Both the position numbers and the translations under genes were made by a program. A stretch of DNA of 64,000 bases, taken from positions 124,001 through 188,000 of IMG/VR virus record IMGVR_UViG_3300020608_000013; one strand, given 5' to 3'. A model generated the notes under the pieces. It was not told the origin of the DNA. It saw only the letters and a program-made list of their open reading frames with translations, and ran no database searches. Below, piece by piece: positions 1 through 29,051 of the stretch (the first letter of the stretch is position 1; each line of letters begins with the position of its first letter).

Positions 1-2605
1 GTTCTACACAAGGGTCTTGCATTATCGTCAACCATGTTGCGTTAGGCTTCATTTCTGGTTTTTGACGACGTTTAGCTTTCCTATTCTTGTAATCCTCGAC
101 CGATTTAAACAATTCTTTATAAGCGATGCTCGGTAGACGTTCATAACCTCTAACGCGTGACATTAACTCACTGTTAGGGTCTTCATGGTAATCGAAAGTT
201 AATAGTTCTACAGCACGTACAAGTAACGGAATGAACTCGTGGGGTTCGCCCATAGTAATTAACAAGTCTCTTGAGATCGGGTCTATGAATAGTTCGTTAT
301 AAGTCTCTATTTTCACCAGACCTCGCGCTTCTACGTTTAAGGTGTTTAGTATACCTAATAACCCTTCAGGGGTGTCGTAGTGAGCGACATTGTAATTTAA
401 GTTGGTTTTGTTGTAGGCGGCTAACCCGCTAAATAATAACTCCTCTTGAAAGTTTATTCGGTTAAATATTAGGTGGTAGTCTTTAAAGGTTATTGCATAT
501 TGATCAGGTTTTAATACATATTCCTCACCAACAGGTTTTACCGTTACATCTCGTGCAAAATGTTCAATACAGTAAGATAGCCCTTTTAAAGTCGCTAAGA
601 TTATAATGACAGGGATATTTCTCCCCATAAGTTTAACGGTTGCGTACTCTGTGAGCGAGTGTGTATCGAAGCGTAAAACATCCGTTAAATGTTTTTTATC
701 AACGTTGTTGTTTTCGTTTAAATAAGTGACTACCCCATCGTTGTTTAAGAAAAGTAATTGCCCTCCGTTATTAGTAACACCTATGAAAGTACCGTACTTT
801 TTTTCAGGCTTGGTGATGTCTTTTGTAGTCAACGTTTGACGTGTTTTATGGTTAAATGTTAAACGTGTGTCGTCACTAGTCTCGATCCAGTCAAATGATT
901 TTGCTAATGCGCTATAGTGTCGACCCTGTTGTTTAAAGTTGTTGTCGAAAACAGGTGTTGGGTTAAGTGAATAGTTTTCATATTTTAAACTAGTTTGGTT
1001 CACCGTTTTCTTTAACCATACCGCATAGTTATTTGCCTTACGAATACCTCGTTGTACAAATATTTTACTGACTGCGCTAGAGATAACGACATTTTCAGGA
1101 CCAATTTTTCTAAGCGGCATATCGACGGTTTGCTTACGCATCCGTGATAGATTACCGTTATTCATGAAAACACCGTCTTCATCTACCACAGGTAGCTGTA
1201 TAGTGAGTGTCGTTGCCTCGCCTTGTATGGGTTTATACCTTACTTTATACAACATGTAATTATCCTTAACAGATTTGACATGTTGTTTACTATACCCTTC
1301 TAAAACCCAACCACCTCGTTGAATGTGTGAAATGGTGTTAACCATATCCTTTTCCAACAGTTCTTCGATGTACTGTGTATTATCGTTAAATAACGATGAC
1401 TTTAACATCGACGCTTTAGTCACGCCTTTTATTTTAGGGAGTTTATCCCCTTTTAGTATAAGTTCGTCAGGCTTGATAGCAGTCAAATCATCTAGTCGGA
1501 TGGTAGGATCATCAGGGCTTTTAATATCGCGCCATTTACCAAGTTTACTTACAGTGTCGCGATGCGTCTTTTCATCAATAAGACCCACTTTAAGTAAATA
1601 ATTTAGTTTATTTTCGTTGAACGTTTCTATTTTCGGGATCGGTTCATTGTAAGTTTTATTTACATAAGTAGGTTTAGTGGTCGGGATTAACGTGTCGTTT
1701 AACTCCTCTTCTAAAATATCTAACTTTTCGACATCTTGATCATCATACTCTTTTGTAACAGTCGCCTCACTAATCCCATTTAAGAAAGACATGAGTTGTT
1801 TATTAAGTACTTTTGAATCTTTTCTAGAACGGGGTGGTATGTTTTTCCCTATAGTGGGTGAATATGTTTTATCTTTATTAAGATTGTGCAACCAACCTAA
1901 ATTTAAAATAACATAGTGTGTATTAAATTTCAAAATAAAGTTTAACCGACTTGCTTGTTCGGGTGTTAGCTTCCCAAGTCGTGTGGCGGTGTCATTTACA
2001 TTGGTGGAGCGATACAGGTCAAGTAAAACTAATTTACTGTAAGATAAACCTTTACTAAATAGTTGTTTATCGTCGATATGTTTTAAATAGTTTTGAGTCT
2101 TCTCATCGTATTTCACATTATCTAATTCGATTATATAGTAGGAAGGTACGTTTAATTTACTCGATTGTACCAAGCGCTCTAGAAAAAGGTCTAAAATACG
2201 TGCCTTCTTTTGTTGTGCAATACGATCGCGATCGCGTTCATTTAATGTGTGTTTTAATGAATCGTAGTTTAGAATGTAACGACCTTTTAAATCACTAATC
2301 GCTAACGGGTTTGTCGAGACGTGTTTAAACGTGCAATCACTATGTGTTTTCGTAAAATGATCGACAGTTTCTCGAACAGGGCGGTGAGGCATACCCTTAA
2401 GCCCTTTCTCATTATAGATAAGGTAAGGGGTTGTCGTTCTATAGGAGGTTAATTTAGTTAAGGGTTTAAATGGGGTGTCGCCGTCGGTCAGGTAATGTAC
2501 GATACAATTAGTAGGTAATTGTAGTAAATCGTAGTCTTTAACAAGGGGGTTCTTTAATCGTTTAGGTTCTCTAATTTCGTTATAGTGGACTACTAGATTA
2601 CTCAT
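1..2605 (-). CDS. rpoB: Virion RNA polymerase beta subunit, N-terminal part (phiKZ gp178-like); runs off the left window edge
   Basis: Not in the ORF track because there is no stop inside the window. My translation from ATG 2605 stays open to position 2 (MSNLVVHYNEIREPKRL...QLPVVDEDGVFMNNGNLSRMRKQTVDMPLRKIGPENVVISSAVSKIFVQR...EMKPNATWLTIMQDPCVE), which resembles gp178-family motifs. It is directly downstream of the gp180-like gene. Confidence 0.88.
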   Translation of the reverse strand, partial: MSNLVVHYNEIREPKRLKNPLVKDYDLLQLPTNCIVHYLTDGDTPFKPLTKLTSYRTTTPYLIYNEKGLKGMPHRPVRETVDHFTKTHSDCTFKHVSTNPLAISDLKGRYILNYDSLKHTLNERDRDRIAQQKKARILDLFLERLVQSSKLNVPSYYIIELDNVKYDEKTQNYLKHIDDKQLFSKGLSYSKLVLLDLYRSTNVNDTATRLGKLTPEQASRLNFILKFNTHYVILNLGWLHNLNKDKTYSPTIGKNIPPRSRKDSKVLNKQLMSFLNGISEATVTKEYDDQDVEKLDILEEELNDTLIPTTKPTYVNKTYNEPIPKIETFNENKLNYLLKVGLIDEKTHRDTVSKLGKWRDIKSPDDPTIRLDDLTAIKPDELILKGDKLPKIKGVTKASMLKSSLFNDNTQYIEELLEKDMVNTISHIQRGGWVLEGYSKQHVKSVKDNYMLYKVRYKPIQGEATTLTIQLPVVDEDGVFMNNGNLSRMRKQTVDMPLRKIGPENVVISSAVSKIFVQRGIRKANNYAVWLKKTVNQTSLKYENYSLNPTPVFDNNFKQQGRHYSALAKSFDWIETSDDTRLTFNHKTRQTLTTKDITKPEKKYGTFIGVTNNGGQLLFLNNDGVVTYLNENNNVDKKHLTDVLRFDTHSLTEYATVKLMGRNIPVIIILATLKGLSYCIEHFARDVTVKPVGEEYVLKPDQYAITFKDYHLIFNRINFQEELLFSGLAAYNKTNLNYNVAHYDTPEGLLGILNTLNVEARGLVKIETYNELFIDPISRDLLITMGEPHEFIPLLVRAVELLTFDYHEDPNSELMSRVRGYERLPSIAYKELFKSVEDYKNRKAKRRQKPEMKPNATWLTIMQDPCVE

Positions 2606-2610
2606 AGGTT

Positions 2611-4218
2611 TTACTCAAATTCAGTTAGATGGGCGTAAACTAATTCGTTCACGTTGTTACTTGGGCTATACATTAATTTATTTTTACGGTCAAGGTAGTA
2701 ATGGGCTTTATCGAATAAATTATGGACTTCTTGTATAGCGTCTTCAGTCCATAACGTATGAGCAGAAGTCATGTCACCATCATTATCGGCTGCTAATGGA
2801 CCGTAGTGGTTGACGTGGGGCGACATTCCGTCATAGTAGAATGTACTACCTCTGAGTGGGAAGTTAACGATTTTCTCACCAATAATAGTACCACTACTAT
2901 CAACTTGATCCAAATGAGTCGCATCGTTAGTTGTTTGTAAGTAGATTAATGAGGGATAGGTACTACCTTCATTAGCCGCAGGGTAACGGGTTACTATAGT
3001 AGGAGAGTCTCCTGCATAACTTTGCACCGATAGGTAGAGTAACTCAGTTAAATCTAAAGGTCTCAAATCTTGTTTATTGAAAACAGGCGCAAGGTCATTT
3101 TTATCGAAAAGTAACTGAACATATTTGTCATTCGATGCGATTAAGAATAAGGGCTTGCCTTTCACTTTAATAATCTCACGACGAAGTGAGTGGTTGGCGA
3201 ACCGATCAATAAGTTTACGGAGACCCTTTTCAGTATTTAATTCAGTATCGTTCTCATCAAACTTTATTACCGTTGGTTTAAAATTTGGACCTTCAAGTAC
3301 ACGAACAGTTTGGTTTGTAGGGTCGAATACTTGATCGAAAAATATAGATTTTAAATTAAATAACGCTTTAGGTAATAGGTTACTGACCGTTTGGTATAAG
3401 CCTAGAACTGTATGGTTTTCAGTGGGTAGTGTTTCATCATCGAGGTCGTGGTAACGCACGTTCATTGCGGTGAGAACGTTACGTGTTGTGTTATAAACTC
3501 CACGGTTTGCAAATTTATCCTGTGCGAACTTTTTGCGCCCGAACATAATAGACCTTATATGATGATAAACTGCATATACACCAAGTTGTATTTTAAATCG
3601 TGTAGCGTCTGCACTATACCTCGCTTCCTTATCTAATTTTGAAGGAATCAATGTGGTGAGTTGTAGCACTTTACGATACATAGGGGTTAACTCGTTTTCC
3701 TCTGGTTGACCATCGCTATTTTCTTCGACATCGCGCAGTCCCGCAGGGTAAACAAGAAATTTACTTAACAGTAAGTTATTCCTATTCATGCGGTTAAAGT
3801 CGACATCATAATTATGTCGATTGGATTGGTTGTACTCTAATCCATCGGGGTCGAAATTGCGTATAAAAAAGTCGAAACCTGTTTCACCATCAATAGCCTT
3901 CTCAAACCGCTTACTTTTCGAGTTAAAAACGGCACGTTCTTTACCTGCCATAATGTCAATGTAAAAAGCTTTCAAACGCGTTAATGTGAAAAAGATCGCA
4001 GGTTGTAAGACGGGTAATTTTAAATCAATATATCCGAAAGTAGTGTCCCGCGCTTCATCACCCTTCAGTCCAAAAATAGATTCAGAATAGAAACCTTTGT
4101 GATGATAGGCCTTCTCTCCGCTTTCGTAGATGTCGGGTACTTCAACAGGTTTTATACTGTTCACTTGCTGTGGCGTGAGTTCTAAAAGACCGAACTTTAG
4201 TGGCTGTACTTCACCCAT
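2611..4218 (-). CDS. rpoC: Virion RNA polymerase beta-prime subunit with catalytic DxDGD motif (phiKZ gp180-like)
   Basis: GFYSESIFG at the N-terminus, RNVLT and VTRYP motifs, catalytic LAADNDGDM. Lies between the gp178-like and gp181-like genes. Confidence 0.92.
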   Translation of the reverse strand: MGEVQPLKFGLLELTPQQVNSIKPVEVPDIYESGEKAYHHKGFYSESIFGLKGDEARDTTFGYIDLKLPVLQPAIFFTLTRLKAFYIDIMAGKERAVFNSKSKRFEKAIDGETGFDFFIRNFDPDGLEYNQSNRHNYDVDFNRMNRNNLLLSKFLVYPAGLRDVEENSDGQPEENELTPMYRKVLQLTTLIPSKLDKEARYSADATRFKIQLGVYAVYHHIRSIMFGRKKFAQDKFANRGVYNTTRNVLTAMNVRYHDLDDETLPTENHTVLGLYQTVSNLLPKALFNLKSIFFDQVFDPTNQTVRVLEGPNFKPTVIKFDENDTELNTEKGLRKLIDRFANHSLRREIIKVKGKPLFLIASNDKYVQLLFDKNDLAPVFNKQDLRPLDLTELLYLSVQSYAGDSPTIVTRYPAANEGSTYPSLIYLQTTNDATHLDQVDSSGTIIGEKIVNFPLRGSTFYYDGMSPHVNHYGPLAADNDGDMTSAHTLWTEDAIQEVHNLFDKAHYYLDRKNKLMYSPSNNVNELVYAHLTEFE

Positions 4219-4234
4219 AATCGCTCCTCTTGAT

Positions 4235-4289
4235 AAAAAAAATAAACATTTTCTAGTACACTAACGAGCGAGAACGCTCGTTAGTGTAC
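4235..4289 (-). terminator. Hairpin (15-bp stem 4256-4289), 13-nt gap, then T8 on the minus strand
   Basis: gtacactaacgagcg-agaa-cgctcgttagtgtac; A-run 4235-4242 on the + strand. Confidence 0.7.
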
Positions 4290-4310
4290 CGTACTCAATT
4301 TATCAAGCCA

Positions 4311-4832
4311 TTAACCTTTAACGCTATAAGTCGTTTTAACCTCCCCACCACTTAAAGTGATGCATTCATCTTGCTTTTCTAGGTATACTTCATTACATTC
4401 AATCATGGAGAGGAATGTCCTAAAGTAATTAGCAACTACATTCAACCCGCTACTACACCCATTGATAAAATCAATTTTCCTACGAGTAGAAGTGTCTAGA
4501 CCATTCTGATCATGTATGAATTCACTAGGCTCTGTTAAGAAGATTTTATTTTCTGTCCAGTCAGTAGGGTAGCAAACATCGTTTTCATTAAAAAGTAGCA
4601 CGCGGGTCTCGCATCCTTTATGGTGTGATACACAAAAGACCATACTACCACAACCCACAAGCGGTGTAAAAAAGCACAGCTCGTAAGGACTTTTAAAACA
4701 ACTCGTTGTTAGAACTCTGTTGTTCAGAAGGTTTCTTGCATTGATGTAATACTTCACATTTAGTAATGTGGTTTGTGTTAGGAGTATGGTGTTATTGAAG
4801 TAATCGCTATTTCTCATACATATCGCCCCCAC
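4311..4832 (-). CDS. Hypothetical protein
   Basis: 173-aa ORF abutting its neighbour (shared base 4832); no recognisable motif. Confidence 0.7.
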   Translation of the reverse strand: MGAICMRNSDYFNNTILLTQTTLLNVKYYINARNLLNNRVLTTSCFKSPYELCFFTPLVGCGSMVFCVSHHKGCETRVLLFNENDVCYPTDWTENKIFLTEPSEFIHDQNGLDTSTRRKIDFINGCSSGLNVVANYFRTFLSMIECNEVYLEKQDECITLSGGEVKTTYSVKG

Positions 4833-5383
4833 TAATTAGATAGGGTTAATACGTTAGTTTCTGTTAGTAGAACGGATTTATTTTTAATTATCCGTACGAA
4901 GGCTTGTTCATTCATTTGACTGAACACCCAGTTTATGTGGTCAGGGGATTGATTTACACTATTTGGTATTAGGGTCTTCAGGACGCTTGCGTATCGCAAG
5001 ATGGGGGGTATTGCAGCATATGCTTGTTGTATAACAGGTACTAATGGAGGAAGCGTGCTGTCTAACGTGTTAGCGATATTAGACGTTAACAACCGTTCGT
5101 TAAAAACAACTCTTTTCATTTTAGGCGTGTATATGATAATATCTGTACTATCGCCCGCACTATCGGTAGTGTAATAGAAACGCTCACCATGTAACGTACT
5201 GGATAGAATAGTCTTTTTTCTTAGGTTAGGCATCACACCTTTCTCAAAAACTTCCTTTACTAACACAGGCGTTACCCGTAATGGTCTTAGCGGCTCTACA
5301 TTTATGCTAGATTGTTTTGTTTCCATGTTTGTTTTCCTCGAGTTAAAATTGGGAAGAAATGTGCTATTTACAAAATAGCACAT
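4832..5383 (-). CDS. Hypothetical protein (true start may be the internal METKQ)
   Basis: 183-aa ORF in a tightly packed minus-strand operon. Confidence 0.7.
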   Translation of the reverse strand: MCYFVNSTFLPNFNSRKTNMETKQSSINVEPLRPLRVTPVLVKEVFEKGVMPNLRKKTILSSTLHGERFYYTTDSAGDSTDIIIYTPKMKRVVFNERLLTSNIANTLDSTLPPLVPVIQQAYAAIPPILRYASVLKTLIPNSVNQSPDHINWVFSQMNEQAFVRIIKNKSVLLTETNVLTLSN

Positions 5384-5401
5384 TATTTAAAGAAAGTTGT
5401 T

Positions 5402-6004
5402 TTAAAATTGACCTGGTGTTATCAGACCCACATCGCCCCTTTTTAAAAAAGAGCGGCTTCGGCTTGACGCTCTTATGTAGAGGTAGCACCTTTTATCCAG
5501 CGCAGGATGTTGTTTAATACTTTTTACCGTATAAACTGTTTTCTCACCTTTCTCAACAAAGACCTTTTCTTCATCAGTGGTTGTGATCTCACTACATAAA
5601 GTTGCTGTGTGGTAAATACACCATTTTGCCAATAAGGTGTGTTTTGTCGATAAGATGGTTTCTTCATGGTCTATGTGGTTTTCACCACGTTCCCTTACTA
5701 AGCCTCCGTCGACAAACCGTCTATAGTCACGAGCAAATAAGATTGGTCCATATTGTGCAATCTCTTTAAGATTTTTGTCAAAAAGGTAGATTGCTAGTTT
5801 ATTACCTAAATGGTGCGTCACCCCAAAGTAATCCTTGTTAAAGGTATGGACAATGACTTTCTCCCCCGTGTGTAGGTCCTTTGGCGGAGGTATGTCGTAA
5901 TAATGGTCGAGTAACCTTATGTTGTGCAAGGACCTAGCATCGTGTATTATTAATTCATCATAAGACCTGAATAATTTTTCAATCAAGATTTGGAAAATTG
6001 TCAT
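5402..6004 (-). CDS. Hypothetical protein
   Basis: 200-aa ORF with stop/start coupling to the upstream gene at 6004. Confidence 0.75.
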   Translation of the reverse strand: MTIFQILIEKLFRSYDELIIHDARSLHNIRLLDHYYDIPPPKDLHTGEKVIVHTFNKDYFGVTHHLGNKLAIYLFDKNLKEIAQYGPILFARDYRRFVDGGLVRERGENHIDHEETILSTKHTLLAKWCIYHTATLCSEITTTDEEKVFVEKGEKTVYTVKSIKQHPALDKRCYLYIRASSRSRSFLKRGDVGLITPGQF

Positions 6005-6615
6005 TATATCGTCGCATAGGTGAATTGCCCGTGCTTAATACGAGCAGGGACATTGTTTATGAACTCATTGACACTCGACCCAACAACCCGAGTGTCGTCG
6101 TTTAACTGTATAGTTAGTTTAGGACTAACATCATAAAGAGCCTCTATATTAACAAGCTCTCTACCACGTAGGTCTAGGAGTCTTAGGTTTTTGTAGGCGG
6201 TCAGTGTTCGACAGTCTATTTGCGCGTCAGGGTACGCGCTATTTAAGTAGAGCTGTTTTAGGCGGGGTGCGCCACCTATAATCGATAACCCTTGTACGTT
6301 AGAAGCATATAAAACCTCTAAATAAGGTAGTCTATATAAGACCACGACATCATCGTGGATGGGCCTTGAAATATCGAGTATGACTAGTTCTCTAAAGTCG
6401 CTTAAAAAGCTATAGTCTTTTATAAACGCACCTTCAAGGGTAATACCTTTAACGGTGTCATACCACTCTTGTGTTAGTTTATCGACGAAAACTTCTACAT
6501 TCACGGCATTTGTTAAATTGACAAATGGGGTTGGTTTTGGTAGGCGAGATTTTTGGTTTAAGGTCTGTACGTATGTTGTATTTCTATGTTTGAAAACATC
6601 GGGGGTGTTGAACAT
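6004..6615 (-). CDS. Leucine-rich-repeat protein
   Basis: Recurrent LxxLxL units: FRELVILDIS, LPYLEVLYASN, APRLKQLYLNS, YKNLRLLDLRGRELVNIEAL. Confidence 0.75.
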   Translation of the reverse strand: MFNTPDVFKHRNTTYVQTLNQKSRLPKPTPFVNLTNAVNVEVFVDKLTQEWYDTVKGITLEGAFIKDYSFLSDFRELVILDISRPIHDDVVVLYRLPYLEVLYASNVQGLSIIGGAPRLKQLYLNSAYPDAQIDCRTLTAYKNLRLLDLRGRELVNIEALYDVSPKLTIQLNDDTRVVGSSVNEFINNVPARIKHGQFTYATI

Positions 6616-6638
6616 TACATATCTCCGTTTTTGAGTTT

Positions 6639-7343
6639 TTAAAATTCATAATCTTCCACGTCAAGAGGTCTTCTAATAACCCCTAGCTCATCTTCGTCTA
6701 GATCGTCCTCGAACTCATCGTGGTCCTGTTCATCTGTATATACAGTTTTGATGGTCGTACTTTGTTGGAGGTACTGACTCAGTTCCTCCTTGTCGTAGTT
6801 ACTACCTAGTAGCGTTAGGCGTTCTATATCGGTATCGATTAAAGCGTCTAAATTCTCTAGGGTGAGACCTGATAGGTCTAGAGACGTTAACGACCTAAAT
6901 CCCGTTAAGAGGTTACAGTCTAGCACATCAGTGTCACACCATGTCGTCTCTGTTAAATCCAGGTGTACTAGAAGTGGTAACTTATGCAACCGCTCTAGCT
7001 CATGTGGGGGGAGGGTCGCTCCCTCCATTATTAGAACCTTGATGAACAGACCCTCAACGCCCTGAATCTGTTCTATATCATTATAGCTTATATCGCAATA
7101 ATGGATACTACGAAATAACGACATGCCGAAAAAATCCTCTAGAGCGTTTTCTCGACAGCGGATGGCGGTACAACCATTCATGAAAGATCGTGGTAATTCA
7201 AGGAGGACGGCGCTTTCTTCTAATACAACGTTATCTAGACTTAGGCTGAACCCTTCATCGTCCTTAAGTCGATCAGCTAGTTTAAACAACTCGATTAAGT
7301 CATTAGGTTCGTGCCATTGAACAGGCGTTTTAATCTCGGACAT
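6639..7343 (-). CDS. Leucine-rich-repeat protein with acidic C-terminal tail
   Basis: IHYCDISYNDIEQI, LPLLVHLDLTET, FRSLTSLDLSGLTLENLDAL, IERLTLLGSN; tail DEQDHDEFEDDLDEDE. Confidence 0.82.
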   Translation of the reverse strand: MSEIKTPVQWHEPNDLIELFKLADRLKDDEGFSLSLDNVVLEESAVLLELPRSFMNGCTAIRCRENALEDFFGMSLFRSIHYCDISYNDIEQIQGVEGLFIKVLIMEGATLPPHELERLHKLPLLVHLDLTETTWCDTDVLDCNLLTGFRSLTSLDLSGLTLENLDALIDTDIERLTLLGSNYDKEELSQYLQQSTTIKTVYTDEQDHDEFEDDLDEDELGVIRRPLDVEDYEF

Positions 7344-7378
7344 TTAAATTCCTCTTTCCATATTTTGATGCCAATATA

Positions 7379-7386
7379 ATAATATA
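7379..7386 (-). promoter_or_regulatory. Putative early (virion-RNAP) promoter core TATATTAT
   Basis: One of eight intergenic copies; one base from the phiKZ early promoter consensus TATATTAC; 36 nt upstream of the LRR gene start at 7343. Confidence 0.65.
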
Positions 7387-7414
7387 TGTTCGTAAATATT
7401 TACATTTAAAAGGA

Positions 7415-10400
7415 GTGTCGTTAATGAGTGACAATGAACTACACCAACTCGATAGTAATGAAGAAGATCGTATGTTGGACGATCTGTTCAATGACGACTA
7501 CGATCCACAAGGTTTTGACAAAGGGTCGAGAGACCCAATACAAAGTTTTTATAAAGGGACACGTAAAGAACTAAAAGAGACATTTACAGACTCTTCAAAA
7601 ATTGAAGATTTATTAGAAAAAACCCTACCCGACGAATACGCAGAAGCGTTGAGCGTTTTTAACTCAACAACAAGTGCGATAGAAGATGTCGTTGACGCTT
7701 CTAAAAACGATTTCCGCTATAAAGCGAAAGAGATATTAACCTCAACCGAAAAGATATTGCCCAATAAAGCTACCTCACTTAAAGAGAGAATTAGTAAACT
7801 CAACGAGTCCATCACTATCGATGATGAAGATGATGGACCAATAGGGATCAGTGAGGAAGAGGAGTTAAAACAGCGCCGTAAAGAAGAGTTAAGTAGTGCT
7901 TTGGCGAAACTGGCGCGTAAGGAAGAAAATCGTGATATAGTTACGAGCGCTGCTACTTCAGCATCTGTCGATAACCTAACCTTATCGACGGTTAAAGGTA
8001 ATCAAGCGATACTAACCGCACTGTCTGCGTTAAGTCGTAGTACTGAACGCACGGCTAGTTTTCACGAACAGATTACAAATAGCTACTACCGCAAATCACT
8101 AGAACTCCAATACCGCCAATTATTTACCCAGATCGATACCTATAAACTGTCAAGAAGCCACTTTAAAGAAATTGAACTTATTATGAATAAAGTTCAACAT
8201 AATACTGGCTTACCAGAGTTTAAGAAAATTACTCAATCAGAGCGGTTTGCTGAATTGTCTCAAACGAAGTTCATGATGGCTGCACAAGATTCCTTGTTCG
8301 GTAATGCAGAGTTTATAAAGAAGGGGATAGAGAATCTTAAAGATAAACTAGGTAGTAAGATAGATACTATCAAGAATACGGCTTCCTTAGTTGCTCAAGG
8401 TAAAGAAGCTATTGGTGACGAAGACCCTTATGAAGAAGCGGGTAAATCGTTCTCTAAATCATTAGGTGTTGTGCTCGGCAAGCTCTTTAAAGGACCTACA
8501 GAAGAAGAACGTCTCGAAGCTTTGCGCGATAGAGCTGAGCGTGAAGACCCTACTTCTATATGGGGTAAACTTTATCGGAAAGTGACGGATGAGTACCATA
8601 AGCGTAATGATGTGTTTGAAGAGAACACGAGTGAGCTTAGAGCAAGGGTTCGCGAGATCGGTCAGGAACTTGGTCGCAATACTGCTAGTTTAGAAGACGT
8701 ATTAAACCGCACAGCCTCCTCGGAAAGATTAGAGGATAGTATGGGTGATGGGTTTGCCAAACGTTTTGGTAAGGCGGCTGCTCGTAATATACTTAGCGCT
8801 TTCGGGGAAGCGACGGATGTCAATTTTGAAGATCGTGATATTGAAGATGAGTTTGGTGCATTCGCTAAACGAGATAAAACGACATTAAACCAAGTAATCC
8901 CCACTTTACTTTCTAAAATATACGATGTAACTCGCGCTATACATGAGGGTAGCGATCAAGTTACTGAAACAGTTTACGATCGAAGAGATGGTAAAATTAA
9001 GTCAAGGGAGGCGCGTGGCGCTGAAGTACGTGAGCGGTTTACAGGTGAGGCGGTAGCAAGTTCTTACCGTGGTGCGCTAGAAGAACTCCATAAGAAAATA
9101 GATGATCTTGGTGATTTTGATGAGGTAACAAGTAAGGAAGTAAAACGTAAGTTAAGCGAGATTGGGTTTAACGATGTACTGTCTAACGGTCTAAGTGCGG
9201 TTAATATCGATACGTTACTTAATGAAAAGTTTTATACACCTGAAGAAGAAGACCTGTCAAATAAAATACGTGAGGTTTTAAAAGATCGGTTAGATGATGA
9301 TAAAAAGTTAAAAGGGGAACTTAATGATGAGTTAATACGGTTAAGGAAGAACATCCGTGACGTTAGGGGGGAGATGGATGAGTATAGGCTTGAGTACGGT
9401 AGCGATGGTCTGGTTGACTCTGGGTTAATTACTGTCGATAGTAACGGCTCGCAAAGTTTAAACTTAGACGCTTATCGGCGCTACCTACTGGGTGAGTCAG
9501 TACTACAATCAACAGAAAGTGAGCGTAGTGAGGACACATCTACAAGAGAGGAAACACGCGAACACGATCCAGAGCGTAGTCAACGATCTGTTGTGGACTA
9601 CACTACACTACTAACATCTATCGACCAGTCTTTAACTGTCTTGACAGGGCGATCTGTTACAGACTATAGTAGTCCGTTAACTACCCTGAACGACACTGTT
9701 AAGACGATAGCTGAAAAACCTACGCCTGACTATACTGATGCGTTTACACGGATTACAGAATTACTCGAAGAGGTTAGTCGTAAACAACCGATCGATTATT
9801 CAGATAAATTAGATTCAACAAACGCGTTATTGACACGCCTCTACGAACGCCCTACACCATCATTAACCGAAAGTTTAAGCGAAACCAACGCGTTACTTGA
9901 GTCGCAAGTGAGTCGTCCCGACTACGACTACAGTTACCATAAACAAACGAATAAGTTACTTAGTGGGATAAAAGAACAACTTAGTAATAATGGGACAGAT
10001 TTACAACCAATACTAGATGGTATGGCTAGCCACCGTGATAGCCTCATAGAGACGCATACGTTACTACACGACAAGCAACTTGAGGTTCAAGGTAGTTTAC
10101 AGTCGGTTGTTAGGGAAATGGGCGAGACGTTACTAGACTGTTGTCAAGAACAGTTGAATCGTCTGGGTACATCGAAGTCACAACCTACCGTGGAAGAGAC
10201 TTATGATACTACTTCAGTTGAAACAGGTGATTACAAACCTATCGATCTTGTAGAGCTGCTTTCAAAACGACCTGAAGAAATAGACCCCGAATTATTGAAA
10301 CGTATTGACGAACAGCGTTATGAGTTAGTAGAGGAAACTTATACAGACGGGAATGAGAAAGTCAAGGGGAGTTTAATTGAGAGTAAACTCCCTGCTGGGT

Positions 10401-13400
10401 ATGACCTTATTTATAAAGCAGGTTCGTTTACCGTAGGTAAGGTTGCAGGTAAAACGGTTAGTGCGATATATCGTCCCCGTGATGTCTATAAGAAGGGTTC
10501 TCCCTACCCAGCGATGACTGCGGTAGATATGCGAAACGGTCTTTATAGAGACCGTGAAAGTGGTGAGGTCATTAACACTTTACGGGACATTAAAGGCGAT
10601 GTAGTAAATACAGATGGTGATCTAGTATTAACGGATACCGATATTCGTAACGGACTTTACGATAAGAACGCTCGCCGTATAACACTACCTTTCTCAACAC
10701 TAATGCGGATTAGTCGTCGACTAGCTGGGTTTGTTGGTAAAGGAGTTGGGCGCTCTACTTCTTTATTATGGAATGTCGCAACCTTTAGTCCGTTAAGACG
10801 TAGACGCGATAGAACACGACCTAATGTGGAAGGCGTTGAGGGCGATAATGGTAGTCTTCGTAGAGGGCAAGTAAACGCGCCAAGAGTTGTTGAGGTCAAT
10901 GACCCAACAATCGATAAAATCCCTACAAAATTGGATAAGCTCATCAATGTCATTAAAGAACGTATACCTGATCCAAGACGAGCGTTTAATGACCATGATG
11001 GTGATGGTGTGCGTGAGGGGTCATGGCGTAACCTATTTAAGAGGAAAGAACGTCGTGAAGAAAGTGGTCGCGGCGACGTGACGAATATCACCACGACTGA
11101 AGAGAAGAAGGGTAAGGGTTGGTTGCTTTCCCTGTTAGGTGGTGCAGGGGTTGCTACACTAATTGGTCTTAAAAAGATCAAAGAGTTCTTCTCTGGTAGT
11201 TTAATGGATATGCTTAAAGGCGTGACTGAAGTTGCTACTAAGAGTGTCACTACTGTCGGAGGCGGTATATTAAAATTACTCGTGCCCGCAGGTGCAACGG
11301 CAGCAGCCGTAGGTTTAGGTCAACGCCTCATTAACTCAATACGAGGGCTGGGTAATCGCACAAGTAATACTTATGACCAAGTTGCCAATAACGCACCGAG
11401 ACTACTTAACGCGCAAGGGATCGCAGGGAGCCTTAGTCGATTAGGCGCTAGTGTCATGGGTACTATCGGGGGTTGGTTAGGTCTTACAGGGGATAGTAAT
11501 GGTAATCGTTCAAATACACCAGCAGGTCAAAACCAAACGACACAAACGCAACCAAGTCAAACACCACAAAACCAAACAACTCAAGCGCTGAATGATGCGA
11601 GAGACACATTATCTAATGTCGAAAGACCATCGCAAGATGGGCGAAGAGGTGACGGACGAGATACTCGTGACAACCGCAATCCGTTGACGGAGGAGGATCA
11701 AGATCGTCGTGGGCGTGGTAGAGGTCGGGGTGGTTTACTACGAAGAGCGGGTCGTGGTCTTCTCAATTTCGGTAAATCCATGTTCGGGCTTAATGGTGGT
11801 ACAGGGATGGCTGCCAGCGCAGGTCGAGCGGCAGGTTTAGCACGCGCTGGGTTAATCGCTGGTAGTGTTATGTCGGGTGCAGGTGGGTTAGGTGCTGTTG
11901 TTGCGACAGCTAGTACTGTACTGGCCTCGCCTGTTGTACTAGGCGCTGCAACGTTAGCGGCTGTAGGTTATGGAGGGTATAAACTATACAAACATTTAAA
12001 CCGCAATAATGTGACAGGTTTTGATAAACTACGTTTACTACAATACGGTTATAGCGATGGGATGGAGGATCATTACTATACCGTATTACGTCTTGAAGAA
12101 GCCATGCAAGATAACTGCATTTCTTATAAAGATGGTGTGGCGACTATTGATGAGAAAACAGTACCTGTTGAAGAGATATTTGAAATTTTCGATATTCGGG
12201 CTTCAGATAGTACGTTAGTAGCACCTTTCTTGACATGGTTTGATAAACGGTTTAAACCTGTGTTCATCAGACACCTAACAGTGTTATATGGGTTAAATTC
12301 ATCGCTTAAGTTAAAAGAGATTGATAAACTTGGCGGTGATCAGAAATTGACTTATTTGAAGCGAGCGTTATTTGAGACTGGTCCTTACCACATTAATGTC
12401 TCACCGTTGCATTACTATAAAGAGCTTAGTGTTAAATGGGAACATGTTAAAGCACATGGCGAGTCATTGAAAACGCAGTTGAGTAATGAGGATGAGAAAC
12501 AGAGTCCTGGAACGGGACCTGGTAGCGCTTCTACAACCATCAAGGAAGGAGAGAAAGAACAAGTTGCTGATGTCTATAGTAAGGAGAAAGATGAAGGTGG
12601 GCAGAATGTGCCAAAAGGTGTTGATAAACTCATTGCTATGCCGCCCGCACCAGAAGGTTTGTTTAAAGGTATTGATGCGTCTAACGCACAACCACGTATG
12701 CCTGATAAACCTGTTGGAGTACCTTACATCGACCAATCCTTCCAAGGGAAGAGTGAAGCCTATGTACCCGCATCTAGCGGACATGAAAACTACTTAACTT
12801 ATCGTGTACACAGCCCACAGCAAACAGCGAGTAGTCAGCCATTACCCGAAGCTCCAGCGACTAAAGGGTATACAGTAGTAGAAGCAAAGGCTGAGGATGT
12901 ACCGCAAGAGAACTACACGCTTAATACAAATGTCGCACCGACTAAAAAGAACATGCTTGAGATTATTCGTAAAGCTGCGCTTAAAGTTGGTGGTGTTGAC
13001 CCAACCTTCGCTCAAACAGTCGCGGCTATTGAGTCATCATTAAACCCTAAAGCGAAGGCTAAAACAACTTCAGCCTCTGGACTATTCCAGTTTGTTAAAG
13101 ATACATGGTTCGAGCAAGTCAAGAAACACGGGAAGAAGTACGGGATAACTAATCGTACCAATCGCTTTGATCCAATGGCTAACTCGCTATTAGGTGTTGA
13201 GTACATCAAGTCTAACTTAGCTGCCCTTAAAAAGGTTAAAAGTAGCCCTAATGCGACCGACGCTTATCTAGCGCATTTCTTAGGTGCTGGTGGTGCGCGT
13301 ACTTTACTACGACACTTAGCGAAGAACCCGAACACTAAAGGTAATGCGATCTTATCCAGAGCTGCTAAATCGAACAAGTCTATTTTCTACAAGAAGGGTA

Positions 13401-15115
13401 GAGCGAGAACAGTTCAGGAAATCTACGACTTAATGACAAATAAGGTTAAGAAGAGAGCGGCTGAGTATGGTATACCTTTTAACGCTTCGGGTGGTATAAC
13501 TAGAAGTGGTTCTAGTGATGGAGAGTCTACTAAAGGGGAAGTTGTTAAGTCCTCACCTGTAATGGACGTGACGTTCAATAAAGATGGTGTATCGCCGCCT
13601 ACCCCATTACCTGCAAATGGTGGGTTGACAGGCGCTGGTGGTAGTGCTAATACGCAAGGGGGTGTTCCTACAACACCTGCTAGTTTTATGGGAACGAGTC
13701 AGCAAACGTTCGGTACAAATAGCGCGACTACGCCAAATGTAGAAGGTAGTGGCTCAGCAGATAAACTATTTGGCGGCGGCGCAGACTCTCCTGAAATAAC
13801 GGGTAAGGGTGACGGTGGTGGTACACAAGGTAGCAGTGTTGTTGGTCACGGCGGGGCGTTGAAAGACGGCTCTGGTGGTATGAAATACATCAAGAAGCAA
13901 CGTTCTAGTATACGTTTCAAAGGACTCAACCCTCAGCTCTGGAAACAATTTCTTGGGATGGCTGAAGAGTATGGTGAGAAGACGGGTAAATCGATTCAAG
14001 TTAACGATGGTTTCCGTACTCGCGCAATGCAAGAGGCGTTGTTTAAGAAATATGGTCCAGGACGAGCTGCTAAGCCAGGACATTCTCGACACGAGACAGG
14101 GTTAGCTATAGACATCCAAAGTGCTACTGCGGCTAAACTTGAAAAGCTTGGTCTTATGAAGAAGTATGGGTTCACCAGACCTGTAGGTCAAGAACCTTGG
14201 CATTTAGAACCCGCAGGTATACAGCTTGACCCTAAAAGGTCTAAAAGTGACCCTGAATATGCAAGTAAGATGATTGCAGCCTCCGCAGGGCGTGGCGGTG
14301 GTGGTTATGGGATGAAGAAAAATGCTCGTAAATACGGTCGTGATGTAAGTTTGGCAAAATCCCTATTCGAGGCAGGCACGCCGATTAAACCTTCAAAACC
14401 AGCGTCACCGACTAACCTCGACAAGACAGAGAAGACTGCACTGAACAAGGCAGGTATTACACCACCCAAACCTGCTATAGGGGGTGGAGGCGAAGCGCCC
14501 TCTAAAGATCAGACGATGGCTAAACTCGCGGAAGCGAACAAAGTTGTTACAGGAGGGACAACAACAAGTGGTGTTGAATATGGTAGAGACGGTAAACCCT
14601 TACCACCACTACCACCTGGCACGGTTAAAACAAACAACCCTTGGCCAATGCCATCAGCAACTAAAGCTGCGCCGACACCAGCGCCTATAGTTGCCACCCC
14701 ACCTGTTATTGATAACCTTTCTAATAGTGACGCGGTAGCAAGTGTGGATAGTGAGCCTAAACCTAAGTCTACGCCTACAACAGTGCCAAAACAAAACAGT
14801 AATGTACAATCTGTACTTAGTGGGTTGAACCCTTATCAATCAAAAGAGTTTTCACCAACGGCTGAAATTGGTACGAATACAGCAAACATGGCCAAGACGC
14901 TTAGTTCGTCAGATGTCACGCTTAGAGAGATAAAGAGTCTGTTGAATCAATACCTTAAACAAAACAAACCTTTGAATACGGGGGATAAAGTTGAAGAACT
15001 TAAGCAAGAGGAGAGTATTGTTAAACCATTACAATCTAAAAACCCTACTAGTGTACCGTTACCTACCATAACGGAATCAAAACCTTTGCCAGTAAATATG
15101 GAAAGATCGATATAA
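7415..15115 (+). CDS. Tape-measure/tail-associated lysin (phiKZ gp181-like) with lytic transglycosylase and M15 peptidase domains
   Basis: 2566 aa, next to the gp180- and gp182-like genes. SLT motif AAIESSLNPKAKAKTTSASGLFQFVKDTW (~12950-13470). M15/VanY-like GFRT..Q..L...AAKPGHSRHETGLAIDI...EPWHLE (~13910-14215). Hydrophobic Gly/Ala-rich central segments. Confidence 0.9.
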   Translation: MSLMSDNELHQLDSNEEDRMLDDLFNDDYDPQGFDKGSRDPIQSFYKGTRKELKETFTDSSKIEDLLEKTLPDEYAEALSVFNSTTSAIEDVVDASKNDFRYKAKEILTSTEKILPNKATSLKERISKLNESITIDDEDDGPIGISEEEELKQRRKEELSSALAKLARKEENRDIVTSAATSASVDNLTLSTVKGNQAILTALSALSRSTERTASFHEQITNSYYRKSLELQYRQLFTQIDTYKLSRSHFKEIELIMNKVQHNTGLPEFKKITQSERFAELSQTKFMMAAQDSLFGNAEFIKKGIENLKDKLGSKIDTIKNTASLVAQGKEAIGDEDPYEEAGKSFSKSLGVVLGKLFKGPTEEERLEALRDRAEREDPTSIWGKLYRKVTDEYHKRNDVFEENTSELRARVREIGQELGRNTASLEDVLNRTASSERLEDSMGDGFAKRFGKAAARNILSAFGEATDVNFEDRDIEDEFGAFAKRDKTTLNQVIPTLLSKIYDVTRAIHEGSDQVTETVYDRRDGKIKSREARGAEVRERFTGEAVASSYRGALEELHKKIDDLGDFDEVTSKEVKRKLSEIGFNDVLSNGLSAVNIDTLLNEKFYTPEEEDLSNKIREVLKDRLDDDKKLKGELNDELIRLRKNIRDVRGEMDEYRLEYGSDGLVDSGLITVDSNGSQSLNLDAYRRYLLGESVLQSTESERSEDTSTREETREHDPERSQRSVVDYTTLLTSIDQSLTVLTGRSVTDYSSPLTTLNDTVKTIAEKPTPDYTDAFTRITELLEEVSRKQPIDYSDKLDSTNALLTRLYERPTPSLTESLSETNALLESQVSRPDYDYSYHKQTNKLLSGIKEQLSNNGTDLQPILDGMASHRDSLIETHTLLHDKQLEVQGSLQSVVREMGETLLDCCQEQLNRLGTSKSQPTVEETYDTTSVETGDYKPIDLVELLSKRPEEIDPELLKRIDEQRYELVEETYTDGNEKVKGSLIESKLPAGYDLIYKAGSFTVGKVAGKTVSAIYRPRDVYKKGSPYPAMTAVDMRNGLYRDRESGEVINTLRDIKGDVVNTDGDLVLTDTDIRNGLYDKNARRITLPFSTLMRISRRLAGFVGKGVGRSTSLLWNVATFSPLRRRRDRTRPNVEGVEGDNGSLRRGQVNAPRVVEVNDPTIDKIPTKLDKLINVIKERIPDPRRAFNDHDGDGVREGSWRNLFKRKERREESGRGDVTNITTTEEKKGKGWLLSLLGGAGVATLIGLKKIKEFFSGSLMDMLKGVTEVATKSVTTVGGGILKLLVPAGATAAAVGLGQRLINSIRGLGNRTSNTYDQVANNAPRLLNAQGIAGSLSRLGASVMGTIGGWLGLTGDSNGNRSNTPAGQNQTTQTQPSQTPQNQTTQALNDARDTLSNVERPSQDGRRGDGRDTRDNRNPLTEEDQDRRGRGRGRGGLLRRAGRGLLNFGKSMFGLNGGTGMAASAGRAAGLARAGLIAGSVMSGAGGLGAVVATASTVLASPVVLGAATLAAVGYGGYKLYKHLNRNNVTGFDKLRLLQYGYSDGMEDHYYTVLRLEEAMQDNCISYKDGVATIDEKTVPVEEIFEIFDIRASDSTLVAPFLTWFDKRFKPVFIRHLTVLYGLNSSLKLKEIDKLGGDQKLTYLKRALFETGPYHINVSPLHYYKELSVKWEHVKAHGESLKTQLSNEDEKQSPGTGPGSASTTIKEGEKEQVADVYSKEKDEGGQNVPKGVDKLIAMPPAPEGLFKGIDASNAQPRMPDKPVGVPYIDQSFQGKSEAYVPASSGHENYLTYRVHSPQQTASSQPLPEAPATKGYTVVEAKAEDVPQENYTLNTNVAPTKKNMLEIIRKAALKVGGVDPTFAQTVAAIESSLNPKAKAKTTSASGLFQFVKDTWFEQVKKHGKKYGITNRTNRFDPMANSLLGVEYIKSNLAALKKVKSSPNATDAYLAHFLGAGGARTLLRHLAKNPNTKGNAILSRAAKSNKSIFYKKGRARTVQEIYDLMTNKVKKRAAEYGIPFNASGGITRSGSSDGESTKGEVVKSSPVMDVTFNKDGVSPPTPLPANGGLTGAGGSANTQGGVPTTPASFMGTSQQTFGTNSATTPNVEGSGSADKLFGGGADSPEITGKGDGGGTQGSSVVGHGGALKDGSGGMKYIKKQRSSIRFKGLNPQLWKQFLGMAEEYGEKTGKSIQVNDGFRTRAMQEALFKKYGPGRAAKPGHSRHETGLAIDIQSATAAKLEKLGLMKKYGFTRPVGQEPWHLEPAGIQLDPKRSKSDPEYASKMIAASAGRGGGGYGMKKNARKYGRDVSLAKSLFEAGTPIKPSKPASPTNLDKTEKTALNKAGITPPKPAIGGGGEAPSKDQTMAKLAEANKVVTGGTTTSGVEYGRDGKPLPPLPPGTVKTNNPWPMPSATKAAPTPAPIVATPPVIDNLSNSDAVASVDSEPKPKSTPTTVPKQNSNVQSVLSGLNPYQSKEFSPTAEIGTNTANMAKTLSSSDVTLREIKSLLNQYLKQNKPLNTGDKVEELKQEESIVKPLQSKNPTSVPLPTITESKPLPVNMERSI
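9596..9991 (+). repeat. Five to six tandem 22-aa (66-nt) degenerate repeats inside the gp181-like protein
   Basis: DYTTLLTSIDQSLTVLTGRSVT / DYSSPLTTLNDTVKTIAEKPTP / DYTDAFTRITELLEEVSRKQPI / DYSDKLDSTNALLTRLYERPTP / SLTESLSETNALLESQVSRPDY / DYSYHKQTNKLL... Confidence 0.8.
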
Positions 15116-18335: not shown

Positions 18336-18393
18336 AAAAAATAAATGAATAGAAAGTACACTCACTTAATGCACGTAGCATTAAGTGAGTGTA
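18336..18393 (-). terminator. Hairpin (16-bp stem 18357-18393), 15-nt gap, then T6
   Basis: tacactcacttaatgc-acgta-gcattaagtgagtgta; A-run 18336-18341. Confidence 0.65.
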
Positions 18394-18400
18394 TGAATAG

Positions 18401-18823
18401 TTAATCGATCTGTGCGTGACCTACTACAAATAGGTTATAGAGGATGGTCAGTGCGCCTAAATAGACTGTACCTTTACCAAATTTGGCTAATGCGGTATTG
18501 AAGGGAGGTATCACGGTCTCCTCAAAATAACTACTGTAGTTTTCTCGAATCGTTTCGTCCCGTGGGGGTGGGTAACTACTAGTCACTGATTTCGTGATTC
18601 GTTTTAGGCTATTCAAACATTCTATATCTGTAGCGATATAGATAATTGCCTCAACATCGGAACGTATTTCAGTTATGTTAAGTATGTTGTCGAGAATTGT
18701 TTTACCGTATGCATCATCTACTAAGGTATATATGTTTATACTACGAAGTAAGTCTACAGTTTCGGGGCTGATTTTTTCAATATGGTTAGCTGTTAGGGGG
18801 TTGCTTGCTGTCTCGTTTTTCAT
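18401..18823 (-). CDS. Hypothetical protein
   Basis: 140-aa ORF. Confidence 0.7.
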   Translation of the reverse strand: MKNETASNPLTANHIEKISPETVDLLRSINIYTLVDDAYGKTILDNILNITEIRSDVEAIIYIATDIECLNSLKRITKSVTSSYPPPRDETIRENYSSYFEETVIPPFNTALAKFGKGTVYLGALTILYNLFVVGHAQID

Positions 18824-19289
18824 CTTCGTCAGTCTCTTCTATTTCAGGAATGGTTATTGCGCTAAAAGTCTCTTCTATCGAGGCTAGGCGTGTGGTCATT
18901 GCGTCAAAATCATCGTATGCGCCTTCCTCTTCATTTTCATAAATAACAACTCTATTCGAGACTACTAGCGCTTCGCTAAAGGTCTCGTTACTTGTGGCAT
19001 TAACTTCAACTTTTATAGTAAAATCAGGTACACCTAAATAGTTGACTAATAAGTCTATAAAGGTCTTCATAGTGAGGGAATCACCGATTAAGGTTTTGCG
19101 TATGTTACCCTTTAAGTTCGACACGTTCCGATTGTTTTTACCCGCTATTAAAAGATAGCGTGTCATGCAACGTGCCTTCATCTCTGGGTCATCTGCACCT
19201 AGACTAGTGGTGATTTGATCAAATATTGATTTTAACAGTTTATTGGAGTCTTGCCTTATGTCGGTACTGTTATCTGTACTTTCATCCAT
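18786..19289 (-). CDS. Hypothetical protein, resembling a conserved phiKZ-like family
   Basis: KGNIRKTLIGDSLTMKTF resembles a recurring jumbo-phage motif (from memory); acidic C-terminus. Confidence 0.6.
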   Translation of the reverse strand: MDESTDNSTDIRQDSNKLLKSIFDQITTSLGADDPEMKARCMTRYLLIAGKNNRNVSNLKGNIRKTLIGDSLTMKTFIDLLVNYLGVPDFTIKVEVNATSNETFSEALVVSNRVVIYENEEEGAYDDFDAMTTRLASIEETFSAITIPEIEETDEDEKRDSKQPPNS

Positions 19290-19663
19290 AATTGTTCAAT
19301 TATTAATAATTTTAAATAATCATCGTCCCTAATAGGGGTATTTAGTAACTGGACTAGTTTCATCACCTCCTTCTCTTGATAAATTTTCTTTATAATGAAA
19401 AAATCTTTAAAGTTGATTTCGTGATGGTTGTTAAATGCTAGATTACCATCTCTTTGCTCAAGTACTATATTTAAGTCAACCACTGTATTGATATTTTGAG
19501 GGATTTGTAGCGTCATTGGTTGTGAGTTAGTACTATATACACATTTAAAAATAACAGGTTCACTAATTTCTTCCATCAGGTACTTCAACTGGTGTTTGTT
19601 AGGTGTGTGTAGACGTTTATTCTTTTCTTTTCTCAAGGAAAAAATATTGGTTAAGTACATCAT
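19256..19663 (-). CDS. Hypothetical protein (start uncertain: 19663 leaderless, or 19576)
   Basis: 135-aa ORF; the first ATG is 4 nt downstream of a TATATTAT motif. Confidence 0.6.
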   Translation of the reverse strand: MMYLTNIFSLRKEKNKRLHTPNKHQLKYLMEEISEPVIFKCVYSTNSQPMTLQIPQNINTVVDLNIVLEQRDGNLAFNNHHEINFKDFFIIKKIYQEKEVMKLVQLLNTPIRDDDYLKLLIIEQLWMKVQITVPT

Positions 19664-19667
19664 GTTT

Positions 19668-19675
19668 ATAATATA
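19668..19675 (-). promoter_or_regulatory. Putative early promoter core TATATTAT
   Basis: In the divergent intergenic region 19664-19707. Confidence 0.6.
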
Positions 19676-20119: not shown

Positions 20120-20176
20120 AAAAAATAGATAGTGACGAGACAGCTACCTATGCTTTTATTAGCATAGGTAGCTGTC
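20120..20176 (-). terminator. Hairpin (16-bp stem 20139-20176), 13-nt gap, then T6; between convergent genes
   Basis: gacagctacctatgct-tttatt-agcataggtagctgtc; A-run 20120-20125. Confidence 0.7.
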
Positions 20177-24963: not shown

Positions 24964-24967
24964 CAAG

Positions 24968-25008
24968 TAACACAACACTACCAGTTTTCTTCTGGTAGTG
25001 TTGTGTTA
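24968..25008. terminator. 17-bp stem hairpin between convergent genes
   Basis: taacacaacactaccag-ttttctt-ctggtagtgttgtgtta. Confidence 0.65.
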
Positions 25009-25012
25009 TTCA

Positions 25013-28995: not shown

Positions 28996-29051
28996 AAAAA
29001 AATACAAACAATAGTTCTGTATACGGGTCAATACCCGTATACAGAACTATT
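28996..29051 (-). terminator. Hairpin (19-bp stem 29010-29051), 7-nt gap, then T7
   Basis: aatagttctgtatacgggt-caat-acccgtatacagaactatt; ends the tail-fibre operon. Confidence 0.75.

Follow-up and report, generated by a model that had tools for sequence, protein, structure and literature searches.

Background

Morons, accessory transcription units that lie between conserved genes, were reportedly defined for the lambdoid phages by Hendrix and colleagues. Typical of classical morons are a base composition unlike that of the adjoining DNA and expression from the prophage. Here we describe a unit of related build in the 212,020 bp genome of a jumbo phage, a single contig assembled from a biofilm metagenome (IMG/VR record IMGVR_UViG_3300020608_000013). 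The stretch of DNA that was analysed (the window) comprises 64,000 nucleotides, bases 124001-188000 of that genome, and coordinates refer to the window unless given as genome positions. The unit, which we call the cassette, consists of five co-oriented, minus-strand open reading frames (ORFs), c1 to c5, that fill positions 4311-7343 (Table 1). They lie between the gene for the N-terminal β' subunit of the virion RNA polymerase (vRNAP), which resembles phiKZ gp180, and a tail lysin gene resembling phiKZ gp181. Two of the five genes encode leucine-rich repeat (LRR) proteins, one with good support and one probably, and the other three are orphans. The cassette is probably a lineage-specific, accessory early operon with a moron-like build, which begins at an early promoter and is bounded by a hairpin and T-run.

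The gene content of the phage is phiKZ-like, with the major capsid protein, tail sheath, terminase and DNA polymerase among its core genes, and two split multisubunit RNA polymerases occur together with phiKZ-like core synteny. In every profiled phage of this group, the early promoter is a conserved AT-rich motif of about 10 nt that is centered at -10, and the middle and late promoters escape prediction (PMC7598289). The early promoters of the phiKZ vRNAP (PMC7598289, PMC8244752) number 28-32, compared to 24 copies of an AT-rich motif of about 10 nt in the present genome. In both cases the promoters show a strong strand bias and lie upstream of genes for the non-virion RNA polymerase (nvRNAP) and of small genes with no assigned function; the motif sequence, however, is specific to this phage.

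LRR-type domains have also been predicted in a phiKZ-like jumbo phage. In the literature on jumbo phages, we found them only within the large predicted fiber proteins of Goslar (Chimalliviridae). Those of Goslar are large proteins of the virion that carry DUF7941 at the N-terminus, whereas c1 and c2 have no other Pfam or PHROG domain and stand behind an early-type promoter.

When the cassette is set beside the morons, both likenesses and differences appear. Like a moron, it places extra genes between two genes that are adjacent in relatives, it has promoter-like and terminator-like signals of its own, as judged from the sequence, and it is not needed for the conserved module that it interrupts. 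Unlike a classical moron, it has the native composition of its genome rather than a foreign one, uses the phage's own class of early promoter, and resides in a phage of the virulent type; in addition, its LRR genes may stem from the same genome.

A probable insertion at the gp180/gp181 junction

An earlier note on this DNA, made from the sequence alone, placed the cassette between gp180-like and gp181-like genes and proposed that it had been inserted at a conserved core junction. Both flanking assignments are borne out by a match to phrog_2986 and by tblastn to phiKZ gp180 and gp181. The phiKZ genes are indeed consecutive: they are divergent neighbors with a gap of 75 bp, and at this place the present phage has an early-type unit inside the late gp175-gp182 structural block. 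The order gp175...gp178, gp180 / gp181, gp182 is intact in the window, and the cassette is its only interruption.

The note had also suggested a synteny comparison, in which finding the cassette at this junction in most relatives would speak against an insertion. This comparison came out in favor of insertion, since the junction is uninterrupted in phiKZ and in 12 other relatives. In all 13 relatives with this layout, the β' and gp181-like genes are direct divergent neighbors, 29-124 bp apart, with no gene between them. Ten of these are isolates: phiKZ, Vibrio phages sm033 and Yong MS32, Ralstonia phage FLC4-3B, Erwinia phages Wellington and Ea35-70, Proteus phage 7 (a Seoulvirus SPN3US strain), Pseudomonas phages OBP and EL, and Shewanella phage FishSpeaker. 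The other three are the metagenomic contigs that encode the closest β' proteins (35-36% identity). Three further sampled genomes (Halocynthia phage JM-2012, Staphylococcus phage SA1 and Bacillus phage BpSp) are arranged quite differently at this locus. Because the flanking genes adjoin directly in the 13 relatives, sequence comparison indicates that the cassette is a lineage-specific insertion, with a gain as the direction favored by parsimony.

Contigs from two other studies carry the cassette at 97-99% identity and span both junctions. Among contigs from four runs aligned to positions 2800-8700, none skips the cassette, although contigs cannot exclude rare variants. As judged from these alignments, and from the native composition and lack of mobile-element signs described below, the gain is neither recent nor unstable, and the cassette is fixed in the strain variants of the two other studies. 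The variants include an in-frame insertion of GGG (3 nt) in c4 at 5002, a 1-nt insertion at 4825 in the spacer between c4 and c5, and length polymorphism of the T-run downstream of c5, which can be one base shorter or longer.

An origin by homing or transposition was considered and rejected, given the absence of mobile-element signs and the native composition. No flanking direct or terminal inverted repeats, tRNA, or Rfam family were found, and Pfam, PHROG and NCBIfam detect no endonuclease, integrase or transposase domain in c1 to c5. The G+C content of the five genes, overall and at third codon positions, gives z-scores of -0.2 to +1.6 relative to the genes of the genome.

The reading frames themselves appear sound. 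In each of the five, the coding score of its own frame beats that of the other frames, with margins that rank between the 10th and the 97th percentile among the genes of this genome. Sequences resembling Shine-Dalgarno elements precede c1, c2, c4 and c5, and the ribosome-binding sites of c1 and c2 are clear; the start of c3 overlaps the stop of c2 by 1 base. Two starts were refined from the sequence. That of c4 is probably the ATG at 5326, because GAGGA lies 8 nt ahead of it, and that of c5 is probably the ATG at 4817, because the variant insertion at 4825 would cause a frameshift in a gene starting from the GTG at 4832. A hairpin of -14.7 kcal/mol (z = -3.9) occupies part of the 75-nt gap between c3 and the likely start of c4.

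The early-type promoter

The promoter that the earlier note had claimed at 7379 is one of 24 such sites in the genome. The heptamer TATATTA is enriched between genes, with 38 of its 104 copies falling within the 6.2% of the genome that is intergenic. A weight matrix yields 24 sites at 18.8-30.6 bits, all on the minus strand and 12-175 nt ahead of start codons; 22 are intergenic, and two are just inside ORF calls made here. One weaker site of the same placement scores 13.6 bits, and three further matches of 12-15 bits are on the plus strand within coding sequence. As a background, shuffled genomes yield 3.2 matches at ≥12 bits. The consensus of the class is C[G/A]TATATTATA...TG[A/G], with C[G/A] just upstream and TG[A/G] at +13 to +15, and it is the single strong conserved motif class of the genome. 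In the cassette promoter, positions -2 and -1 are C and A, and TGG occupies +13 to +15; its sole mismatch to the consensus is a T for A at +8. When the motif is centered at -10, transcription is predicted to start near 7372.

The class is found upstream of all four nvRNAP subunit genes that were detected and of the gp68-like gene. Behind the site at genome position 91665 come a gene that takes the place of phiKZ gp54 and the gp55-like nvRNAP gene. The site at 83902 (unit 82486-83902) precedes the gp68-like gene together with gp71-73-like and gp74-like genes, and the site at 25403 (unit 24335-25403) precedes a gene pair that includes a likely gp123-like subunit. Since, by the logic of the phage family, nvRNAP genes behind these sites must be read by the injected vRNAP, the class is most likely that of the vRNAP early promoters, and on the strength of its motif the cassette promoter very probably belongs to it. 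The exact variant AACATATATTATTnTAT is common to the cassette promoter and the sites at 83902 and 25403, whereas most other sites have TATATTATA. Promoters with AACATATATTATTnTAT may constitute a sub-class that is co-regulated with nvRNAP genes.

Scans for other promoter types gave little. When the regions upstream of 17 structural or late-type genes were searched for a late consensus, nothing convincing emerged, in agreement with the prediction of PMC7598289, and a σ70 scan found no more sites than in shuffled sequence. As a separate observation, about two-thirds of the early-type promoters are followed by a stable hairpin from about +8 (for example, at the cores at 46606 and 61146), which is predicted to form the 5' end of the transcript.

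The downstream boundary

Downstream of c5 lie the hairpin and T8 run that the earlier note had read as a terminator (4235-4289). Both are present and belong to a recurrent class, but they do not have the canonical terminator build. The local fold around the hairpin (94 nt) has a free energy of -36.2 kcal/mol (z = -6.9), and none of 200 shuffled sequences folds as well. It is thus a stable, G+C-containing hairpin of the kind found in intrinsic terminators. A consensus terminator scan did not call the element, because the T-run starts 13 nt after the stem.

The genome contains 48 perfect hairpins of at least 10 bp, of which 36 are intergenic. The combination of a hairpin, a spacer of 7-16 nt, and a T-run (often TTTATTTTTT) is present in at least 16 copies genome-wide, all intergenic and all on the minus strand, with perfect stems of 14-19 bp. 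At least eight of these elements sit directly upstream of the next early promoter, a placement that fits the boundary of a transcription unit. From its build and position, the element looks like a putative class of terminator in which the U-tract is not adjacent to the stem, and insulation of the cassette from the RNA polymerase genes, as the earlier note had proposed, is plausible.

The description of the cassette as a self-contained unit, also from that note, holds for its promoter-to-hairpin build and not for its singularity, since such modules punctuate the whole genome. Judging from the placement of these signals, promoter-to-hairpin modules are the general punctuation of this genome, and the cassette, with five genes in 3.1 kb, is one of many. 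A second small module in the window has an early-type promoter, three small genes, and a hairpin with T-run (Table 1); it adjoins the gp182-like gene.

Leucine-rich repeat proteins and orphans

The earlier note had counted two LRR genes and three orphans in the cassette. The orphans stand, as does c2, and firm LRR status cannot be given to c1, which is only a probable member. The match of c2 to Pfam LRR_4 scores 28.1 bits against a curated cut-off of 27, and there are weak matches to internalins in NCBIfam. An AlphaFold2 model of c2 built with 13 sequences has a predicted local distance difference test score (pLDDT) of 77-92 over residues ~110-200. The 50 structural matches listed for it are all to LRR domains; that of SspH1 ranks first (Z 9.0, root-mean-square deviation 3.2 over 104 residues), followed by Leptospira LIC proteins, IpaH and internalins at Z 7-8.5. 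Thus, c2 is an LRR protein for which the model predicts a solenoid fold.

For c1, a phmmer comparison with c2 gives an E value of 1e-5 across an LRR unit, and the pairwise identity in a MAFFT alignment is ~30%. The Pfam LRR matches of c1 are below threshold (E 0.028 and 0.071), and a profile of c1 and c2 matches only LRR chains in the PDB, weakly. Its single-sequence AlphaFold2 model (pLDDT 38) is too poor to use. By sequence, c1 is a diverged tandem paralogue of c2 and probably an LRR protein itself.

The resemblance of c2 to the LRR proteins of bacteria (internalins, Leptospira LIC proteins, and IpaH, SspH and YopM) is in the fold of residues 78-203, at Z 7-9. Identities are 7-20%, so this is a resemblance of fold and not membership in a family. 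Unlike the effectors of the IpaH/SspH/YopM type, c1 and c2 consist of LRRs only, in 203-234 residues. Pfam, PHROG and NCBIfam show no further domain in either protein, and no NEL E3-ligase domain, secretion signal, or cell-wall anchor was found.

Relatives of the five proteins were sought widely. No homologue of c1 was found in 5.8 billion proteins (word search), in 50,697 phage genomes, or in IMG/VR, and c2 has no match in the phage genomes or IMG/VR. Neither c3 nor c4 matches any family in Pfam, PHROG, NCBIfam or PADLOC, and Atlas look-ups of both are at noise level; c3 has no homologue in the 5.8 billion proteins or the phage genomes, and c4 has no match in the latter. A full HMMER search of 1.84 billion representatives with c5 returned the protein itself and one spurious match, and the phage genomes contain no match. 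That single, marginal HMMER match of c5, to P0035 (E 6.5e-4), was rejected as spurious, as this is a tandem-repeat protein that was matched six times. PADLOC identifies no defense-system family among the cassette proteins. Within the sequence searches run, then, c1 to c5 have no relative outside this phage population.

Two minor features of the orphans may be added. With about 10 cysteines in 168 residues, c5 is cysteine-rich. Short peptides are similar among c3, c4 and c5, for example VFVEKGEK in c3 and VKEVFEKGV in c4, and the C-termini of c3 and c5 are alike; the similarity is not significant (phmmer E ~1) and only hints at remote paralogy.

Proposed expression of the cassette and alternatives

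The most probable course of events is as follows. The cassette would occupy what relatives keep as a short, divergent promoter region between the vRNAP β' operon and the tail lysin gene. After injection, the vRNAP would recognize the AT-rich promoter, start near the predicted position, and transcribe c1 to c5 as an RNA of ~3.1 kb. Most transcripts would end at the hairpin/T-run element (4289-4235), just before the late β' operon. The products of c1 and c2 would be small LRR solenoids that arose by tandem duplication and serve as protein-binding scaffolds, and c3 to c5 would be fast-evolving orphans. Given the fold and the promoter class, the preferred though tentative assignment is that c1 and c2 bind host proteins during takeover or counter-defense.

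Several observations weigh against this account. The U-tract begins 13 nt from the stem rather than within the 0-2 nt required of a canonical intrinsic terminator. A second motif, ATAAATTG, is located past the c5 stop and ahead of the hairpin, 85 nt before the β' ATG; if it is the β' promoter, then the hairpin would be part of the late mRNA and could not be an absolute stop. The cassette promoter lacks the 5' hairpin that about two-thirds of the early promoters carry, and the early timing of c1 to c5 is deduced only from the class of their promoter. Among sequencing runs recorded as RNA, none contains this phage. Finally, the nearest relatives have ~35% β' identity, and consequently the age and direction of the insertion rest on parsimony.

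The motif ATAAATTG may be a middle or late promoter element. It is known from five sites: in addition to the one at the β' operon, copies precede the start codons of the tail sheath gene and three other genes by 34-38 nt. At the β' operon it lies upstream of the hairpin. The distance from the hairpin to the β' ATG is 36 nt, and no promoter was found in that stretch. These points, together with the displaced T-run, would suit an arrangement in which transcription reads through from the cassette into the vRNAP operon as a single unit, with the hairpin acting in RNA processing or stability or as the 5' stem-loop of the β' mRNA. The 5' hairpins predicted on many early transcripts also suggest that such structures are part of the RNA design of this phage. 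We nevertheless consider read-through improbable. Elements of the same build stand at unit boundaries immediately upstream of early promoters, as expected of terminators. Moreover, the spacing between hairpin and T-run varies little (7-16 nt), that between the T-run and the following promoter varies more (8-48 nt), and the case for ATAAATTG comes down to its five sites.

A second alternative would assign the LRR genes to the late genes, as virion or host-recognition accessories tied to the tail lysin gene. The cassette does adjoin this gene, and LRR or β-helix domains are predicted in the DUF7941 fiber proteins of Goslar. However, the cassette shares its promoter class with the nvRNAP genes, transcription runs away from gp181, and c1 and c2 are small, with no other Pfam or PHROG domain and no structural match in PHROGs, all of which make a late role very unlikely. 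Least credible of all is the idea that the five genes were ancestral at the junction and lost in every sampled relative: the depth of the lineage leaves no close outgroup to polarize the change, but 13 uninterrupted lineages from varied hosts and habitats would need many independent and precise losses, and no homologue of any of the five proteins was found elsewhere.

A family of LRR genes in the same genome

Just past the end of the window, at genome positions 188178-198087 and 204476-205303, lies a tandem family of 11 paralogues of 245-325 residues. Its 11-member profile matches only LRR structures (LIC10831, 4.9e-10; YopM, 2.5e-5). About eight further, weaker members are picked up by a hidden Markov model (HMM) of the family, and three of these lie in the window (Table 1). 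The family thus numbers 11 to ~19 LRR genes, up to one-tenth of the genes of the phage. Most of the family genes are within a minus-strand block at ~184-208 kb of the genome, interspersed with TATATTATA sites. Of the weaker members, that at 51482-52282 is ~9 kb downstream of the nearest promoter site, with no terminator element between.

The genes c1 and c2 share with this family the motif DC..L(P/T)..L..L.....L.N..AL, and at its N-terminus c2 is similar to two of the family members. It is plausible from these sequences that c1 and c2 descend from the phage's own LRR family as distant members. Against this descent, their matches to the family profile rank just below the weaker members and are not significant (hmmsearch E 0.04 for c1 and 0.17 for c2 among 211 proteins), and hhalign gives a probability of 30% (E 5e-4).

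A broader reading, which we regard as unlikely, is that c1 and c2 are dispersed members of a rapidly diversifying early LRR family of ~13-21 genes. Such a family would supply a variable repertoire of host-protein binders, acting for example as decoys or inhibitors of defense sensors. If true, the repertoire would be a counterpart of the expansions of repeat proteins in giant eukaryotic viruses, and the cassette would show the family seeding new early units inside a conserved late block.

The cassette is an ordinary kind of accessory insertion, of interest mainly for its two LRR proteins, and its practical weight is modest. As far as we found in the literature, the tools described for host takeover by jumbo phages do not include small proteins made of LRRs only and encoded behind early promoters; should c1 and c2 bind host proteins, they would be new candidate factors for counter-defense or takeover. 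The cassette also illustrates cleanly how an early unit can be accommodated in the conserved late block of phiKZ-like phages with the flanking core genes undisturbed, and this unit is built on the phage's own promoter and terminator grammar. The promoter and terminator classes provide a usable lexicon for an uncultivated, very deep-branching phiKZ-like lineage.

Table 1. Features of the cassette, its flanking genes and related elements (window coordinates unless marked as genome)
Feature	Position	Strand	Remarks
Early-type promoter	7371-7391	minus	core TATATTAT at 7386..7379; weight matrix 25.2 bits
c1	6639-7343	minus	234 aa; probable LRR protein with acidic C-terminal tail
c2	6004-6615	minus	203 aa; LRR protein
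c3	5402-6004	minus	200 aa; orphan
Internal hairpin	5358-5384	minus	12-bp stem, 3-nt loop
c4	4832-5326	minus	164 aa from probable ATG 5326; ORF open from 5383; orphan
c5	4311-4817	minus	168 aa from probable ATG 4817; ORF open from GTG 4832; orphan
ATAAATTG	4296-4303	minus	candidate middle/late promoter element for β' operon
Terminator-like hairpin	4256-4289	minus	perfect 15-bp stem (4256-4270 with 4275-4289), 4-nt loop
T8 run	4235-4242	minus	begins 13 nt past stem; GTTTA ahead of T-run
vRNAP β' N-terminal subunit, gp180-like	2611-4218	minus	phrog_2986, 7.5e-136; tblastn vs phiKZ gp180, 2.8e-58
vRNAP β	2-2605		5 bp from the β' gene
Tail lysin, gp181-like	7424-15115	plus	2563 aa, likely start ATG 7424; three collinear tblastn matches vs phiKZ gp181; Pfam SLT and VanY
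Second small module	18357-19675	minus	early-type promoter 19675; three small genes (18401-19663); hairpin and T-run 18357-18393
Hairpin/T-run element	18357-18393	minus	
Hairpin/T-run element	20139-20176	minus	
Hairpin/T-run element	24968-25008	minus	
Hairpin/T-run element	29010-29051	minus	
Hairpin/T-run element	34932-34967	minus	
Hairpin/T-run element	39355-39389	minus	
Hairpin/T-run element	42059-42090	minus	
Hairpin/T-run element	61198-61231	minus	
Weaker LRR family member	51482-52282		family HMM
Weaker LRR family member	61240-61926		family HMM
Weaker LRR family member	63347 to window end (64000)		family HMM
ATAAATTG	genome 115525	plus	
ATAAATTG	genome 60133	minus	
ATAAATTG	genome 62936	plus	
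ATAAATTG	genome 96241	plus	

The phage and its lineage

Homologues of the phiKZ nvRNAP proteins gp55, gp71-73 and gp74 are present in the genome, as is a gp68-like gene, and one nvRNAP gene is likely the gp123-like subunit. The β' protein has at most 36% identity to any of the 5.8 billion proteins and ~34% in the best phage isolates, which, as a measure from sequence, places the lineage very deep within the phiKZ-like phages. A megablast of the region against the 50,697 phage genomes gave no match, and with the β' protein as the query, no close relatives were found in IMG/VR or JGI metagenome contigs. For this reason, the insertion could not be finely dated.

The genes for β' and β are only 5 bp apart here (2606-2610). 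An extra gene stands at this junction in phiKZ (gp179), in EL and FishSpeaker (HNH endonucleases), and in two metagenomic relatives. By this comparison, the usual insertion spot among relatives is the β'/β junction and not gp180/gp181.

We call the phage phiKZ-like rather than a proven chimallivirus because chimallin went undetected with phiKZ gp54 as the single query: the best phmmer E value is 0.14, in a single-sequence test that is weak at such evolutionary distance. The gene at the gp54 (chimallin) position, at genome 90403-91605, encodes only 400 residues and has no similarity to chimallin or to any family that phmmer or the family libraries could detect. Its early promoter is of the strongest type, and it is equipped with a terminator element of its own.

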